NCBI GenBank assembly: GCA_025558095.1
Contig: JAIVFI010000006.1
Location: 806,001-870,000 of the forward strand
From: Hyaloraphidium curvatum SAG 235-1
Lineage: Eukaryota > Fungi > Monoblepharomycota
Direction of reading: 5' to 3'
DNA length: 64,000 nt
A program made the translations under genes and the position numbers. This document shows positions 2,797 to 13,521 of this stretch, one piece after another. Below the pieces are notes generated by a model. That model saw nothing but the letters and a program-made list of their open reading frames with translations. It did not search any database and was not told the DNA's origin. How positions within the stretch are numbered: position 1 is the first letter of the stretch; each line of letters begins with the position of its first letter.

Positions 2797-3965
2797 CTAC
2801 GCCGCGGTCCACCGCTCAAACTCAGCGGAGTCGACCACGCACGAGCTGGCGTTCGCGTGCCCCCCGCCGCCAAACATCTGGCTCACGGCCGTCGTGTCCT
2901 CCTTCCCAATCGATCGGAAGGACACCTTGGTCTTACCCGGCTCCACAAAGTAGGCCACCACCCCGATCGCGGGCAGCCCCATGCCCCGCGACATCTCGGC
3001 AAGCTCGTTGCCGAGCTGCGACCGATGCTTCGCGAACGCGTCCGCCTCCTCCGCCGTGTCCATGCGGACCGCCATGCACTCCTTCGGGGGCTGGGCGGGG
3101 AGCCGCACCAGGAAAGCCTTGGCCAGGGCCGAGTCCACGAGCTTCTTGATGGCCGCCATCTCCTCCTTCCCCTGGGCCATCAGCGCGTCCGGATCGAGGG
3201 CAAGCAGGGCGTCAAAGATGCCCGGGTTGGTCTCGGTGGACAGGTCCAAGTCCAGCTTGCCGAAGCCCGCAGAGAACTCCTTGCTCCCCTCGAGCTTCCA
3301 GTTCCACAGGTCCGCGTCCTCGATATGGCACACGATCCGCGCCGTCGCTTCGGACATGGCGGGGCGGAAGTAGTCCCGGGCCATGGTCGCGCCCGACCTC
3401 AGCATGTCGATGTTGAGCTCCACGTTGGCCGGGGCAAGGCTCGCGTAACGGCCCGCCTCGACGGTTCCCTGTGGCACAGCCGGGCCCGATGGGCCGAACG
3501 AGCCCTTCAGTGCCGCCAGCTCCGCGCCCTCCGAGACGAGGTTTTCCATCGCCGTTTTGTGGTGGTCGAGCACGACGACCTTCCCCCGCGGCACCGCGGC
3601 GGCGACAGCCTCGACGAAGCCCTTGGGCCCCGTGAAGTCGACAAAGTACACCGTCTCATCGCCGGAGAGGGCGAGCTTGCCGGGTTCCGGGCGCGCGGTT
3701 ACGGCGAGCGGCTGGAACCGCGCCGAGGGGAGCGCAAGGCGGACCGAGAGCGCGGCGAAGATGCCGTCCGGGCAGGGCCAATCTGGCAGTCGCCAGCAAA
3801 AGGAAAGGGAAAAGGCGCCGAATGCCGTTGCAGGGCAACAGAACGTCCGCCAGAGGCGGCGGGACCGGGCAGACGCGTCGCGCAAACAAAGTGGCGTCAG
3901 GCACGTCGGGCAGGGGAATCGCGCGGCGGGGACCCACGGTAGACGCAGACGGCCTTGTGTGACAT
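2797..3965 (-). CDS. DHH/DHHA1-family phosphoesterase (one intron ~3784-3937)
   Basis: Spliced N-terminus MSHKAVCVYHWPCPDGIFAAL, then YFVDF, VVVLDHHKT (DHH), HIEDADLW and C-terminal GGGGHANAS (DHHA1). Confidence 0.85.
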
Positions 3966-4540
3966 TGTTCTGAAGATCTGCCCCACTGCGTTCCGTCTGC
4001 AGAGTTGCTTTGGCGGTCGAGCGAACCGGAGAACTCGAAGCATCAACGCGGGTCCCTGCCGCGGCCCAGCGCCCGATGCGAGTGCTCCCAAAACAGAACT
4101 GGAATCGCAATTTTAGGATACTAGGAAGAAAGAAGCTTGATTGATTCTATTGCGCTCTAGTTGTTCGGGACCGGGAGGTTGGAGTTGTGCTTCCTCGGGT
4201 CACCGGCTACTACTGTGCGACCCGCGCCTAGTCCCGCCGACAACGCGAGGCAAGCCGCACGGGAAAGTGAAGAGCGTGCTGCGTCTCATACACTCGAGTG
4301 AAAAGCCATTTGAGAAGTTTCGGGGAAAGCGAGGTGTGGCGAACGACGTAGTTTTCGGATGGCTGAACTGGATCCTCGGCTTCCGAGAAGGTTCCCCAAG
4401 TTTTTCCCGTGGAACACGACCCCTGCGCACGACCGCACCCTCCCATCCGGGGGACTTCCGATTATCGCAACCTGTGGGGAAAGACCTCGTGCTTGCCCAA
4501 CCGCTCCCGCGCACGGACCGGATCTGCAGGTTCCGAGAAG

Positions 4541-6157
4541 ATGGAGCCGCCCAGCGTGCCGCCCGCCTCTGCACCCCTTTCGCCCTCGGACACGCACCCC
4601 GGAGACCGCTTCAGCGAGCGGCAGAAAGCTGGCATCCTCGCCCTGACCTCCCTACTCTCCGTCCTCGCCCTGTTCGAGGGCGCGATCTTCACCCCCTGCC
4701 TCCTGGCCGTGCAAAAGGCTTTCGGCGTCTCCCCCGAGGTGGCCAACATGAGCATTACCTCGTATCTCGTCGCCACTGCCCTGGCCCCGCTCCTCTGGGG
4801 CACCCTCTCTGAGCGGCTGGGACGCAAGCCCATTTACGTCGTATCAATGGCGATCTGCCTCGTGTCCAGCGTCGCGCTGGTGTTTTCGCCCAAGTTCAAC
4901 ATCGGCTGGCTCATTGGATGGAGGGCCGTTCAGGGCTGTGGAGCGTGCGCGGCCTTTTCGGTTGGCGCAGGCACGATTGCGGTGGGTGGACGGTGCGGCG
5001 GCCACCGCAATGGGCACTTCACTGACGCCCATCGTCCCCTCGCAGGACATCTATCGCATCGAGCAACGCGGGCGCGCCATCGGCATCTGGACCATCGGCC
5101 CCCTCCTCGGCGCCATCATCGGGCCTGTCATCGGCGGGCCCGTTTCCGAGAGCTGGGGCTGGGAATACGTCTTCGCCGTCGTCGCCGTCCTCACCTTCGT
5201 CCTCCTGGCGGCCATCGTACTCTTCATGCCCGAGACGCTACCGTCGCTCGCCGAGGGTCAGGCAAGGCCAAAGATCAACCCCTTCTCCGCCTTCCCGGCG
5301 CTCCGCCACCTCTTTGTCGACATCCCGATCTACGCTCAAAGCCTGGCTCTGGGCGCGATGTACAGCTTCATCAGCATGATTGCGCGACAGCTGTACGAGG
5401 TCTATGGCTACACCGAGACGGCCACGGGCGTGTACGCCCTCGCACTCGGGATCGGTCAGCTCTTCGGATCGCTTGCGGGAGGCGTCATCGTGAGTTTGCA
5501 GGCAATCCAAGGCACACCCGGTGACTGACCGCGCATCTGGATCCGCAGGCGGACTTCCTCTTCAACCGCGCCCAGGTCAAGGTCAGCGAGACCCGCCTGC
5601 GGGCCTGCTACATCGGCTGCGTCGCGACCGGCACATCCTACATCGCCTGGGCATGGCTCACCTACTACGGCGTGCACGTTGCCCCGGGCCTGGTCTTCCA
5701 GTTCATCATCGGGTTCGCGTCGTGCCTCATTTTCACCCCGACCAGTGAGCCGCCGATTAGGCATGCAGACGGGCCAGAGACTGACCGCGATCCACCCGCT
5801 TAAGTGACCTACCTGATCGACATCTACATCATGGAAGCCGCCTCCATCTCCGCCATCTCCAACCTCTTCCGCCTCGCCGCCTCGGCCATCACCCCGCTCT
5901 TCTCCCCCGCCATGGAAGCCGCCCTCGGCATCGGCTGGATGTACACCGTCTGGGGACTCCTCATCGCCTTCACCATCCTGCCGCTGATCTGGCTGCAGGA
6001 GAAGGTGCTCTGGAAGACGAGGCTGCGCACGGCGCCGTGGTCCGAGGGCGCCGACGCGGGGTTGGGGAAGGTGGTGGACGAGGAGGTGCAGGTCGAAGGC
6101 AAGGTGATCACCGAGCGGGACTCGGGGGTCTCGGTGGAGAAGGAGGTGAAGGAGTGA
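4541..6157 (+). CDS. MFS transporter, DHA1 drug:H+ antiporter-like (introns 4982-5045, 5490-5548, 5745-5804)
   Basis: Motif A (GTLSERLGRKP), WRAVQGCG, GPLLGAIIGPVIGG, MPETLP and many TM segments. Three GT-AG introns join the frames cleanly. Confidence 0.9.
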
Positions 6158-6446
6158 ATGCGGAGAAGCACACGTCGAGTGACTTGGAGGAGAGAGGAGC
6201 GAACTATATCATGTTGGGCACAATCCATCGCATACGCTCAGTCTCCTCCTCTTCCCTGCGCCATTTTCAAGGTTACATCTCCAGCAGCCGGGCATTTGTT
6301 GACCCAGGTGGTTTTGGAACAGGATTGATACCGGGCGCTTGACGCATGCATGTGCTGACAAAGCGCAGCTTCGGGGAGCTCCGCCTCCCCAGCGCACAGG
6401 AAACAGCACACTCCCCGCGCGGCCCGCCGCCGGAAACCCAAAGAAG

Positions 6447-6781
6447 ATGGCCTGACTGATAATTGACGGTGCGCTACCCTGCTACCCGGGCCCGCCGCCC
6501 CCCACCTGACCTCCCCTTCTCCGCCCGACTCGCAATTCTCGCCGACCGCAACAGCCTGCGCGTGGGTCTACGCAAAGGCGACCAAGACCGAGTTCCGGTC
6601 GTGCGTGCTCGGGCCGCCGCCGGAGGAGGAGGAGATGCCGCGGAAGAGGGTGCTGCCGGCGGAGCAGGCTCGGCCGGCTGTGGAGGGCAAGCCCGCCGCG
6701 TCGCCCTCCCCGCCTGTCGGGCATAAGCTGCCCACGGGTCCCACGAAGCCGCCGGCCAGCGGCGTGGTGCGGCAGCAATAG
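6447..6781 (+). CDS. Candidate selenoprotein, 82 aa, Sec (TGA) at codon 3; exons 6447-6468 and 6555-6781
   Basis: aagATGg start, then GCC TGA CTG ATA ATT GAC G|GTGCGC donor. Branch CCTGAC, pyrimidine tract, first AG at 6554. Spliced length is 249 nt ending in TAG: MAULIIDACAWVYAKATKTEFRSCVLGPPPEEEEMPRKRVLPAEQARPAVEGKPAASPSPPVGHKLPTGPTKPPASGVVRQQ. A SECIS lies directly downstream. Confidence 0.72.
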
Positions 6782-6804
6782 GACTCCGGAACGGGGCCGA
6801 GGCG

Positions 6805-6890
6805 GGCCCGCCGCGCGCATGATCCCGCGCTCGGAAACCCTCCCACTGGGACCAAGGGCGGGGCGCGGGGGAACAACAGCGGGGCGGGAC
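6805..6890 (+). promoter_or_regulatory. Eukaryotic type-II SECIS element in the 3' UTR
   Basis: Helix I CCCGCCGC (6807-6814) / GCGGGGCGGG (6879-6888). Core ATGAT (6819-6823) / GGAA (6870-6873). Helix II CCCGCGCTCGG (6824-6834) / CGGGGCGCGGG (6859-6869), 10 of 11 paired. Unpaired AAA (6835-6837). Apical mini-stem CCCT/AGGG. Confidence 0.78.
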
Positions 6891-7520
6891 TGGTCGAGGG
6901 CCACGAAACCTTGATCTTTTGCCTGGATTGCGCGAATGATTTCGATGTATAGAATGACGGACACGGAGTTGTCGAGACTTCGGGTCGAGTCCGAGCGCGG
7001 AGGAAAGGCGTCCGTGCTGCCGTCCTGGGCCGGTGGAGCATTGGGGACGGATTGAGATGGCGCCAATCGCATTTCGAACACTCCTGGGGCAGTGTTGGTC
7101 CGCTTGCCTGCGGTTCGTCCGTGCTGGGTTGGAGGCGTTGCGCCCGAGCGGTGCACCAGGAACTGCCGCGCCATGGACGCCGATTCCGGCCAGACGGCCA
7201 TTTTCGTTCATGTTTCTCGATGCAAGCATTCGGATGGCGACCAGAATCTGCGGGTCGATGTACGCCGATTGGGATGGGGACGGCTCAAGGGTCCAAAAGG
7301 CTCCGCGGGCTGTGCCTCGAACGACGTCGGGGCAGCACCAGGGCCGGACTATAACAAGGGAGAGCACAGAAGCCATGGCCGCCCCGCCCGCCGTCGCCGC
7401 GGGGAGGGCCTACCCAGCACCGGGGATGTGGAGTTTCCGCGCCCTGACGAATGCATACACGGTGGCTGGAGGGGGAGCTGCTGTGCGGCATCCCCCCCAC
7501 TCAGAGAAAATGGACCGACA

Positions 7521-9467
7521 ATGACCCGGGAAAGGCGACGGGCGCCCGCGGGGCGGCGCGATCGGACATTTTGGGGCGGCCCGCGGTCGGCGGTGGCGGC
7601 GGCGTGGGCGCTGCTGGCGGCGCTGCTGCTCGGCGGCGCGGCCCCGCTGCCGCTCCGCCCCGCGGAGGTTGGCCCGACGGATCCCGGGGAATCCGGGCTT
7701 AGGCCGCGGGAATACCTTTTGCGGGACGCTTTAAGCCTTGCGCCCGGCGCGGAGGGGCGGGACAGACGGGCGTGGCCGGTGGGCCCGGCCGGGGCTTCCG
7801 CACAGCCAGTGCTCAAGATGCCCGACCGGCCGCGGACGTCGTCGACGCGGGCGACGACGCGGACGACCACCAGCAGGACGCGGCTGCTGGCGCTCGGCAC
7901 GAGGCTGTTCGACGAGGCGTCAAAGTCGACGTCCAAAACCGCCAGGTCGACGCCAACGGTGACGCGGACATCGACCTCCCGCTCGGAGACCCGCACGAGC
8001 ACTTCCTCTTCGCGGACACGCACCGCGACACGGACGTCGACGTCGCTGTCTGCCACCCGGACGGGCACGCAGACATCCTCTTCCCTCACCAAAACGTCTT
8101 CCTCGCGCTCGGCGACGCCGAGCTCCACCACCCGGACATCGACCTCCCGGACGCAGACCTCGAGCTCGCGGACGGCGAGCTCGACCTCCAGGCGGCAACC
8201 TTCGAGCTCGCGGACGTTGAGCTCCACCTCTCGCACACCAACCTCGAGCTCGCGGACTCTGAGCTCCACGTCCCGCACGCGAACCTCGAGCTCGCAGACG
8301 CGGAGCTCCACCTCCCGCACGCAAACCTCGAGCTCCCGGACAGCGAGCTCGACTTCTAGGACACAAACGTCGAGCTCGCGGACGCTGAGCTCCACCTCCC
8401 GGACGCAAACTTCGAGCTCGCGGACGCTGAGTTCTACCTCCGTCACCCGCACCCAGACCTCATCGACCACCACGCGCACTGCTACGACCACCGTGCCGAT
8501 CACCCAGGTCACCGTGCTAGACTCGCGGTGCTCATACATCCCCGGCGACATCCCGGGTTTCGCGCGCACGGAGCGGTACAACATCGACCTGCTCGTGTGC
8601 GGCGACCGCGCCGAGGACGGGAGCTTCCCGTACGACGGCGTGTTCGCCGAGGCGGCGCGGCGGTGGATGTCGGTCGTGGTGGGCGACGTGCCCACGCTCA
8701 CCCGGACGCAGCCGATCGAGGTCGAGGGGCACGACGGCGAAACCTGGGCCACGGTCAAGGCCGTCGACGACCTGCTCGTTGTGTGCACGGTGGACGACTT
8801 CGACGACGACACGCTCGGAGAGGGGGGCGTGTGGTGGACGCGGCCGCGGTTCCCGTTCCTGAGCAAGGTGCGGCTGAACGCCGCGCATGCCCAGAACCTG
8901 GCGGACCAGGGGCTGCTCCAGGATGTGGTGGGTATCGCCGGAATGCATGGAGAACCGGATGCAGTCGAGCTGATGCATTTTCCTGCGCAGGTGATGCACG
9001 AGATGGGCCACGCCCTCGGTTTCGGCATGGTCTGGGACCGTCCCGCGCTCAACCTCCTCAGCCCCCCGGACTGCTTCGACCGCGCCTCGCGCGGCGACTC
9101 CTTTTCCGCCTCCTTCACGGGCACCCGCGCGTGCGCCGCCAACAACAACATGGGCCTCGCGGGGGCGCCCAAGGTTCAGTCCGCCGCCGGCGAGGCGGGC
9201 GCGTGCGCGCACTGGGACGAGGGCACCTACGGCGCGGAGCTGATGACGTCGTACATCGCCGCGGGGGGCAGCCCGCTGTCGCTGCTGACGGTGGCGTCGC
9301 TCGAGGACATGGGGTACGTCGTCAACAGGTCGAGCGAGTGGGTGACGGGGAACTGGCGCCCGTCGAGGCTGGCGATGCTGGGCGGCGGGGGGAGCAAGGC
9401 GACGGCGAAGCTGGGGGATTGCCTGGCGCACGCGAGGGCCGAGGGGATCAACGTGGTGGAGGGGTGA
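7521..9467 (+). CDS. Secreted/anchored leishmanolysin-like (peptidase M8-like) zinc metalloprotease with Ser/Thr-rich stalk
   Basis: Hydrophobic signal-like segment (AVAAAWALLAALLLGGA), mucin-like S/T repeat, HEMGHALGFG zincin motif, AHWDE, ELMTSY (Met-turn) and LTVASLEDMGY. In-frame intron 8928-8990; a further 5' intron is possible. Confidence 0.82.
   Translation: MTRERRRAPAGRRDRTFWGGPRSAVAAAWALLAALLLGGAAPLPLRPAEVGPTDPGESGLRPREYLLRDALSLAPGAEGRDRRAWPVGPAGASAQPVLKMPDRPRTSSTRATTRTTTSRTRLLALGTRLFDEASKSTSKTARSTPTVTRTSTSRSETRTSTSSSRTRTATRTSTSLSATRTGTQTSSSLTKTSSSRSATPSSTTRTSTSRTQTSSSRTASSTSRRQPSSSRTLSSTSRTPTSSSRTLSSTSRTRTSSSQTRSSTSRTQTSSSRTASSTSRTQTSSSRTLSSTSRTQTSSSRTLSSTSVTRTQTSSTTTRTATTTVPITQVTVLDSRCSYIPGDIPGFARTERYNIDLLVCGDRAEDGSFPYDGVFAEAARRWMSVVVGDVPTLTRTQPIEVEGHDGETWATVKAVDDLLVVCTVDDFDDDTLGEGGVWWTRPRFPFLSKVRLNAAHAQNLADQGLLQDVVGIAGMHGEPDAVELMHFPAQVMHEMGHALGFGMVWDRPALNLLSPPDCFDRASRGDSFSASFTGTRACAANNNMGLAGAPKVQSAAGEAGACAHWDEGTYGAELMTSYIAAGGSPLSLLTVASLEDMGYVVNRSSEWVTGNWRPSRLAMLGGGGSKATAKLGDCLAHARAEGINVVEG
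8157..8450 (+). repeat. Coding tandem repeat, ~7 x 42 bp (14-aa unit TSSSRTLSSTSRTQ)
   Basis: Directly visible degenerate units such as acctcgagctcgcggacgctgagctccacctcccggacgcaa. Confidence 0.9.
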
Positions 9468-12225: not shown

Positions 12226-12897
12226 TCACGCATCGGGCGGGGTCTCGTAGCTCGCCAGCAGCATGCTCTCCGGCTCGGCCAGCGCCTCCCTGTACCACCG
12301 GTCGACCAGCGGGTGCGCGCGCACCGCGGCCACGTACTTGCGGCTGGTGTCCGAAAGCTCCGGCTGCCATGTGATGAACCTCCCGACGACGGGCGCGTAC
12401 ATGGCGTCCGCCAGCCCGAAACTGCCGCCGAAGAGGAACGGCCCGCCGTGCTCGGCGAGGCACTCCTCCCAGATCCTTTCAACCCGCGCGATGTCCGCCA
12501 GCGCGGCCGGCGTCCGCCCGAGCCCGGCGAAATCGCGGCCGGCGTTGAACCACATGTTCTGCCTGAGGCCGCGGAAGCCGGTCGCCATCTCGGCCGAAAT
12601 CGAACGCGCCACGGCGCGGGCGGCGGGGTTGGCGGGCCACAGCCCCGGCTTCTGCTCCGCGCAGTACTCGCAGATCGACAGGCTCTCCCACACGCGCACC
12701 CCCTTGTGCTCCAGGTAGGGCACCAGGCCCGCCGGCGTGCGGGACTTGATGTCGGGGGTGCTCGCGGCGCCGTCGGTCCGCACGAACGGGATCACCGCCT
12801 CCTCGACGTCCAGGCCCGCGAGGTGCACGGCCAGCCAGCCGCGCATGGACCACGAGGAGTAGCGCTTGTTGCCGAGCAGCAGGCGGCCGTCGGGCAT
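12226..12897 (-). CDS. Glutathione S-transferase, bacterial-type, intronless
   Basis: MPDGRLLLGNKRYSSWSMRGWL, GLVPYL, VWESLSICEY, GPFLFG and ADAMYAPVV. Confidence 0.9.
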   Translation of the reverse strand: MPDGRLLLGNKRYSSWSMRGWLAVHLAGLDVEEAVIPFVRTDGAASTPDIKSRTPAGLVPYLEHKGVRVWESLSICEYCAEQKPGLWPANPAARAVARSISAEMATGFRGLRQNMWFNAGRDFAGLGRTPAALADIARVERIWEECLAEHGGPFLFGGSFGLADAMYAPVVGRFITWQPELSDTSRKYVAAVRAHPLVDRWYREALAEPESMLLASYETPPDA

Positions 12898-12982
12898 CGC
12901 GGCGACGGGGCAATCGCGGGACAAGGGAATCCTTTGCCCGACGCTGCAAGCGAGAGAGTGCTTCCGCCGCGTTCGCGTCGCC

Positions 12983-13521
12983 ATGTCGGCGTTGGAACGG
13001 GAGAAAAACGCGTCTTCCGGAGCAGAGAACCACGCATCGGAGCTGGCTGGCCGGATTCCGCGATACCGGGCCTCCCCCGGGAAATCGCCCTCCTAGTCCT
13101 CGACTTGGTCCTGACGGACGATCCCGCCTCGGACGACCGGGACGACGCCGCAGAATTCGCCCTCGCCGGCAGGGCGTGCAGCGGGCTGGCGCTGCCTCTC
13201 GTCGCCCGAGAGCTCTGGCTGGGCCTCATGACGGACGACCGGAGCGGTGCGCGCGGTCGTGCGGGATCCGGCGCGGTACGGCCGCGTCGGCTGTTTTGGA
13301 ACAGGAATTTCGGCGGAAAGCACAAGGATGATGCTTGTTGGGCCGCGTATTCGGATATGTGGCGCCTGCTCGCCGGGACCGAGGAGCACGGTGGAGGTCA
13401 CGAGGCACGAGTACGAATAGGACGCGGCTGTCGGCTGCAGGTGCGGGGTCCCGCGCAAAGGGGGGCAAGATCGCGATCTAGTAGCCAGCTCATGTGGAGC
13501 AGAATAGTGATGAAGCTATAA
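12983..13521 (+). pseudogene. Truncated F-box-like paralog of the 28251-29330 gene
   Basis: SAIPGLPREIALLVLDLVL...FALAGRACSGLALPLVARELWL aligns with AAIPGLPLEIALIILERVL...FALAIRACSEIALPLLSRDLWL. The ATG reaches this frame only via a frameshift or a 35-nt intron (12991-13025), and the reading ends after ~165 aa. Confidence 0.55.

Follow-up and report, generated by a model that had tools for sequence, protein, structure and literature searches.

Can a TGA at the third codon of a small fungal ORF be read as selenocysteine (Sec)? This question is raised by a locus within a window of 64,000 nucleotides (the whole stretch of DNA analyzed) from Hyaloraphidium curvatum, an aquatic early-branching fungus. 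The first-pass annotation, made from the sequence alone, proposed that an ATG at position 6447, an in-frame TGA at codon 3, an 86-nt intron and a type II SECIS downstream of the stop codon may define an undescribed selenoprotein family with an N-terminal Sec.

A spliced, polyadenylated mRNA with TGA at codon 3

To check whether this gene is expressed, we examined the one public run that contains this stretch (Logan contigs). The run is only presumed to be RNA, but three introns of neighboring genes are spliced in it, so that it behaves as RNA. One contig covers 6397–6467 and 6554–6977, skips 86 nt with GT..AG ends, contains the hairpin and carries about 7 A after position 6977, where the genome reads CTTCGG. 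In this mRNA, the ATG at 6447 (aagATGg) is the first ATG and the only one in exon 1, and the next in-frame ATG is codon 35. The product comprises 82 codons with U3 (inferred), C9 and C24. The features on the plus strand are as follows.

6397–6446 (+), 5′ UTR seen in the RNA contig, 50 nt without ATG; as a contig end is not proof of the transcription start, the true start may lie further upstream
6447–6468 (+), coding part of exon 1, codons 1–7 plus one base; start ATG (6447–6449) with a purine at −3 and G at +4
6453–6455 (+), in-frame TGA at codon 3, followed by C, inferred selenocysteine
6469–6554 (+), 86-nt GT-AG intron, phase 1, donor GTGCGC at 6469 and acceptor AG ending at 6554
6555–6634 (+), exon 2, codons 8–34; Cys9...Cys24 segment predicted as a beta hairpin, then a Pro/Glu run, with strong coding-type codon bias
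6635–6781 (+), internal Met35 to TAG (6779–6781); 48-residue Pro/Glu/Lys/Arg-rich tail, predicted disordered (GC3 0.875), possible re-initiation product
6807–6888 (+), type II SECIS-like element with helix I, core ATGAT 6819–6823 / GGAA 6870–6873, helix II, AAA 6835–6837 and an apical stem; the core lies 37 nt after the stop and 277 nt after the TGA in the mRNA
6977 (+), poly(A) addition site

The observation made in the first-pass annotation is therefore confirmed. We also considered whether the SECIS could serve the gene upstream, a multi-exon MFS transporter (4409–6157, plus) that also ends in TGA (6155–6157), 290 nt upstream of the candidate. This was rejected, because the RNA contig of the MFS gene ends at 6103 and nothing covers 6104–6396.

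To determine whether the frame is translated past the TGA, we scored it with a synonymous codon model trained on 1123 codons of conserved genes. Codons 9–34 score +7.1 bits (GC3 0.96), while the other two frames score −11 and −18. The median for coding windows is 9.7 and the maximum among 2152 overlapping non-coding windows is 6.6. These codons lie upstream of Met35, so a start at this position does not explain their bias, and translation should pass the TGA. A start at the CTG of codon 4 is possible but has a poor context.

Sec machinery and SECIS-like elements of the genome

The genome (31.9 Mb, 55 contigs) has one tRNA-Sec (78 bits), SecS (over the cut-off) and an SPS with an in-frame TGA at the usual place. 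PSTK gave one weak match (E 6e-4), and the SelB model used to look for eEFSec matched many GTPases. The first-pass annotation had named a lack of Sec machinery, and transcripts left unspliced at 6469–6554 or ending before the hairpin, as findings that would speak against it; none of these was observed.

Besides SPS, we identified at least 11 TGA-containing genes of known families, assigned by motif: DI-like, SelK-like, SelH-like, two SelW-like, an AhpC/PRXL2C-like, four SelU-like and a thioredoxin reductase ending G-C-U-G. With SPS this makes at least 12, a large set for a fungus. The DI-like, SelK-like, two SelW-like, SelH-like, SPS, thioredoxin reductase and AhpC-like genes lie in the loci that we number L002, L003, L004/L018, L005/L019, L014, L069, L091 and L103; the L004 gene has Lys in place of the first Cys of CxxU. 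The four SelU-like paralogues (contig positions C43:323300, C20:265700, C23:427500 and C27:502300) have TGA at the R-R-P-G-U position, two of them with an intron just before it, and are followed by SECIS-like hairpins, of which the one at C23 is enlarged. This gene set resembles the one reported for Gonapodya (10.1101/314781). No paper in the literature searched joins this species with selenocysteine.

We then asked whether the hairpin is a SECIS. It folds as described in the first-pass annotation (z = −3.15), with helix II made of 10 stacked pairs, including one U.G, plus one more pair. Rfam SECIS_1 does not find it. However, this model found only five elements in the genome and missed those of SPS, SelU, AhpC and TR, and Mariotti et al. 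also found a SECIS for only 5 of 16 fungal genes (10.1101/314781). A pattern shared by six of the genome's elements and the candidate had 88 hits genome-wide and, after scoring of helix II and the 3′ GA, the candidate ranked third. Of the 11 best-scoring hits, eight lie behind selenoprotein genes of known families, one is a false hit inside a RecQ coding region, and the other two both follow a gene with TGA at codon 3. As the pattern was written with the candidate in view, only the helix score is an independent filter. A looser, generic descriptor at a score of 22 or more gave 3 false hits in 666 kb of both strands, or about 0.001 for a 196-nt 3′ UTR.

Covariance models built from the genome's own SECIS were too weak to discriminate: they give the candidate 16.8 and 12 bits, inside the range of held-out true elements (11–22 bits) but also inside the noise. 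In addition, the apical part is longer than in most SECIS of this genome, and the U.G next to the core with a C-G closing pair is unlike the other elements seen here. Further SECIS-like elements were found at C29:443687–443753 (minus; 27.5 bits with one of these models, R2) and, judged by eye, at C12:512083–512130 (plus) and C18:24527–24573 (minus).

The arrangement of a codon-3 TGA with a SECIS seems to recur in an unrelated gene, which the first-pass annotation missed. The best Rfam SECIS of the genome (36.2 bits, C30:527668–527729, minus) lies about 35 nt after the stop of a SelU/PRXL2-like gene (locus L017, positions 1063–170, minus; about 527770–528662 of contig C30). Its catalytic position reads R-R-A-G-C-C-L-C-R-E-D where the paralogues read R-R-P-G-U-x-x-C-R-E-E, and a late exon aligns with the paralogues at E 0.007 and 0.03. 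The only in-frame ATG ahead of the domain is ATG GTC TGA, the 53 codons after this TGA have GC3 1.0 (+19.6 bits), and no other TGA lies in the predicted exons. This gene is a lead of moderate strength only: it is read from sequence without RNA support here, it has a weaker start context (C at −3), and database searches returned no homologue.

Searches for relatives and predicted structure

To identify homologues, we searched with exon 2 alone, exon 1 being too short to search. A word-index search returned none, and searches of the Atlas by features, of metagenomes by tblastn, of Pfam and of PDB sequences gave no relative. A search of the fungus's own genome gave a pyruvate-kinase-like chance hit, a search of 1.84 billion representatives gave two spurious repeat proteins, a degenerate exon 2 motif gave only chance hits in metagenomes, and comparison with Atlas shapes gave TM values of 0.37 or less. 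These searches are weak for a conserved part of some 20 residues and covered no eukaryotic genome other than this one, and a TGA at codon 3 would keep orthologues out of protein databases, so that the blank shows neither novelty nor absence. As N-terminal Met-x-Cys motifs suggested C18orf32 (DUF4512), we searched for PF14975 and found no match in exon 2 or in the genome, although the control gave no signal anywhere either and the N-terminus is split by the intron.

A Met-Ser-TGA-Leu-Ile-Val-Asp hit on contig C28 looked like a paralogue. However, it has no donor at the same position, no exact C-x-W-[VI]-Y motif and no SECIS pattern hit nearby in the complete lists, and about one such hit is expected by chance; it was not accepted. 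Short look-alikes of exon 1 (Met-x-TGA or Cys followed by hydrophobic residues) at C28:128797–128817 (minus), C10:419961 (minus), C27:261396 (plus), C7:439916 (plus) and C31:236946 (plus) could not be tied to a SECIS or an intron and are probably due to chance.

AlphaFold2, run on exon 2 alone and without an alignment, predicts a confident two-strand hairpin over its first 20 residues (pLDDT 87–95) and low confidence after that. In our reading of the strand boundaries, Cys9 and Cys24 face each other at the base of this hairpin. The thioredoxin fold with UxxC or CxxU of the SelW/H/T, SelU, AhpC and DI-like selenoproteins is not found: the motif is absent, Pfam gives no match and the model is a hairpin plus disorder. 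Exon 2 has no transmembrane stretch (maximum hydropathy 0.25).

Inferred Sec at codon 3 and its possible role

Taken together, these data suggest that this is very probably a genuine selenoprotein gene outside the known fungal families. The interpretation given in the first-pass annotation is only partly supported: the spliced mRNA with its SECIS-like element, the Sec machinery, the coding bias and the lack of a match to any family agree with it, but no homologue with Sec or Cys at position 3, the usual proof, was found, and both a "family" and a function remain unproven. The transcript, its splicing and poly(A), the SECIS-like fold, the machinery and the coding bias rest on direct analysis, whereas Sec insertion at codon 3, although highly likely, and any redox role are inferences, the redox role being much the less certain.

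In the explanation that we tentatively favor, the ribosome starts at ATG 6447 and the SECIS, with the fungus's own machinery, recodes the TGA. The initiator Met is expected to be removed before Ala, which would leave Sec as residue 2. Sec would then act as an exposed, mobile redox group that forms and resolves a Se-S or S-S bond with Cys9/Cys24 on a small beta-sheet head, followed by a disordered tail for binding or localization. This would be a mirror image of the terminal Sec of SelK, SelS and thioredoxin reductase. Sec is typically catalytic in oxidoreductases (10.1101/314781), and terminal Sec arms occur at C-termini. On the other hand, the RNA evidence comes from contigs of a single run, no thioredoxin fold or UxxC motif is present, and the second codon-3 gene has no nearby Cys partner, which fits a gate better than a catalyst.

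A selenium gate on translation is the closest alternative, possible but less likely. In this view, Sec is inserted at codon 3 but its job is regulatory: with selenium the full protein is made, and without it the ribosome stops after two residues and at most the 48-residue tail is made, by re-initiation or leaky scanning at Met35. The residue may be dispensable or even clipped off. The same start (Met-x-TGA-hydrophobic) heads the unrelated SelU-like gene, whose catalytic position is Cys and which yet keeps the genome's best Rfam SECIS. Similarly, the first UGA of SELENOP acts as a bottleneck sensitive to selenium (PMC5727441), and AUG-stop minimal ORFs sense boron in Arabidopsis NIP5;1 (PMC11915504). 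In both, a stop codon near the start could tie translation to a trace element, whereas here the stop is in frame with the main ORF and would be recoded. However, two cases do not make a rule, and the candidate has two Cys that could partner Sec.

It is unlikely that no Sec is inserted, with the hairpin being a chance G+C-rich structure or a relic and the protein starting at the CTG of codon 4 or at Met35, the TGA-C being read through by a near-cognate tRNA, or the RNA representing a young or decaying gene with no function. Rfam and covariance models are not discriminating, several chance hairpins are expected in the 3′ UTRs of some ten thousand or more transcripts, ATG-NNN-TGA is common by chance, and no conservation was found. 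But this reading needs a first-ATG TGA, a coding-biased continuation in the same frame and a top-ranked SECIS in the same 196-nt UTR to coincide. Least likely, Sec3 could be a membrane-anchoring residue, acylated like N-terminal Met-x-Cys motifs, or, with C9 and C24, a ligand for a soft metal, a reading that rests only on the hydrophobic residues after the TGA and on three thiol/selenol groups in 24 residues, and exon 2 shows no transmembrane stretch.

The fungal selenoproteins of Mariotti et al. (SPS, SelenoH, SelenoU, AhpC, MsrA, DI-like and TR; 10.1101/314781) also rely on UGA recoding by a canonical eukaryotic SECIS, 40–420 nt after the stop, in early-branching fungi, and most of these families are present in this genome. 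All are known oxidoreductase families with Sec at a known catalytic position, and the search of that study for new families left none standing, whereas the present ORF has no fold or family match and has its inferred Sec at codon 3. Like the predicted product, SELENOK and SELENOS are small, largely disordered and Pro-rich, without a thioredoxin fold and with a single Sec within a few residues of a chain end. Their Sec is C-terminal and they have a transmembrane helix, while here Sec would be N-terminal and no such helix is seen in exon 2; the genome has its own SelK-like gene. Lineage-restricted orphan selenoproteins (Ostreococcus hypothetical proteins 1–3 and MSP, PMC2375036; SymSEP, PMC7539508) were found from a SECIS and have a narrow distribution and no assigned function; the likeness to them is by analogy only, and the descriptions consulted do not mention a codon-3 Sec.

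An expressed orphan with Sec at codon 3 would be a fungal selenoprotein outside the surveyed families, and we found no report of Sec this close to a start codon in the limited set of papers searched. A TGA at codon 3 looks like a two-codon upstream ORF, so gene callers drop it and protein databases lack it, and such genes could be missed widely. The short mRNA also offers a direct test of whether recoding works two codons after initiation and whether Sec can serve as a selenium gate and not only as a catalyst. A broader reading, possible but held with less than even confidence, is that this fungus uses an undescribed class of selenoprotein start, Met-x-Sec, on several unrelated genes, including this orphan and the Cys-type SelU-like gene. 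It would act as an N-terminal redox arm or as a selenium-dependent switch on translation, and such genes would be invisible to gene callers and to homology-based selenoprotein searches across eukaryotes.

Elsewhere in the window, positions 7495–9467 (plus) encode an expressed leishmanolysin-like (M8) protease on a Ser/Thr/Arg-rich repeat stalk. Its intron in the region 8927–8989 is spliced in RNA, and RNA contigs with loose ends at 7659, 7867 and 9361 suggest paralogues. Two long intron-free ORFs lie on the minus strand, one for a DHH/DHHA1 family protein (2797–4110) and one for a putative GST-like protein (12226–12984).
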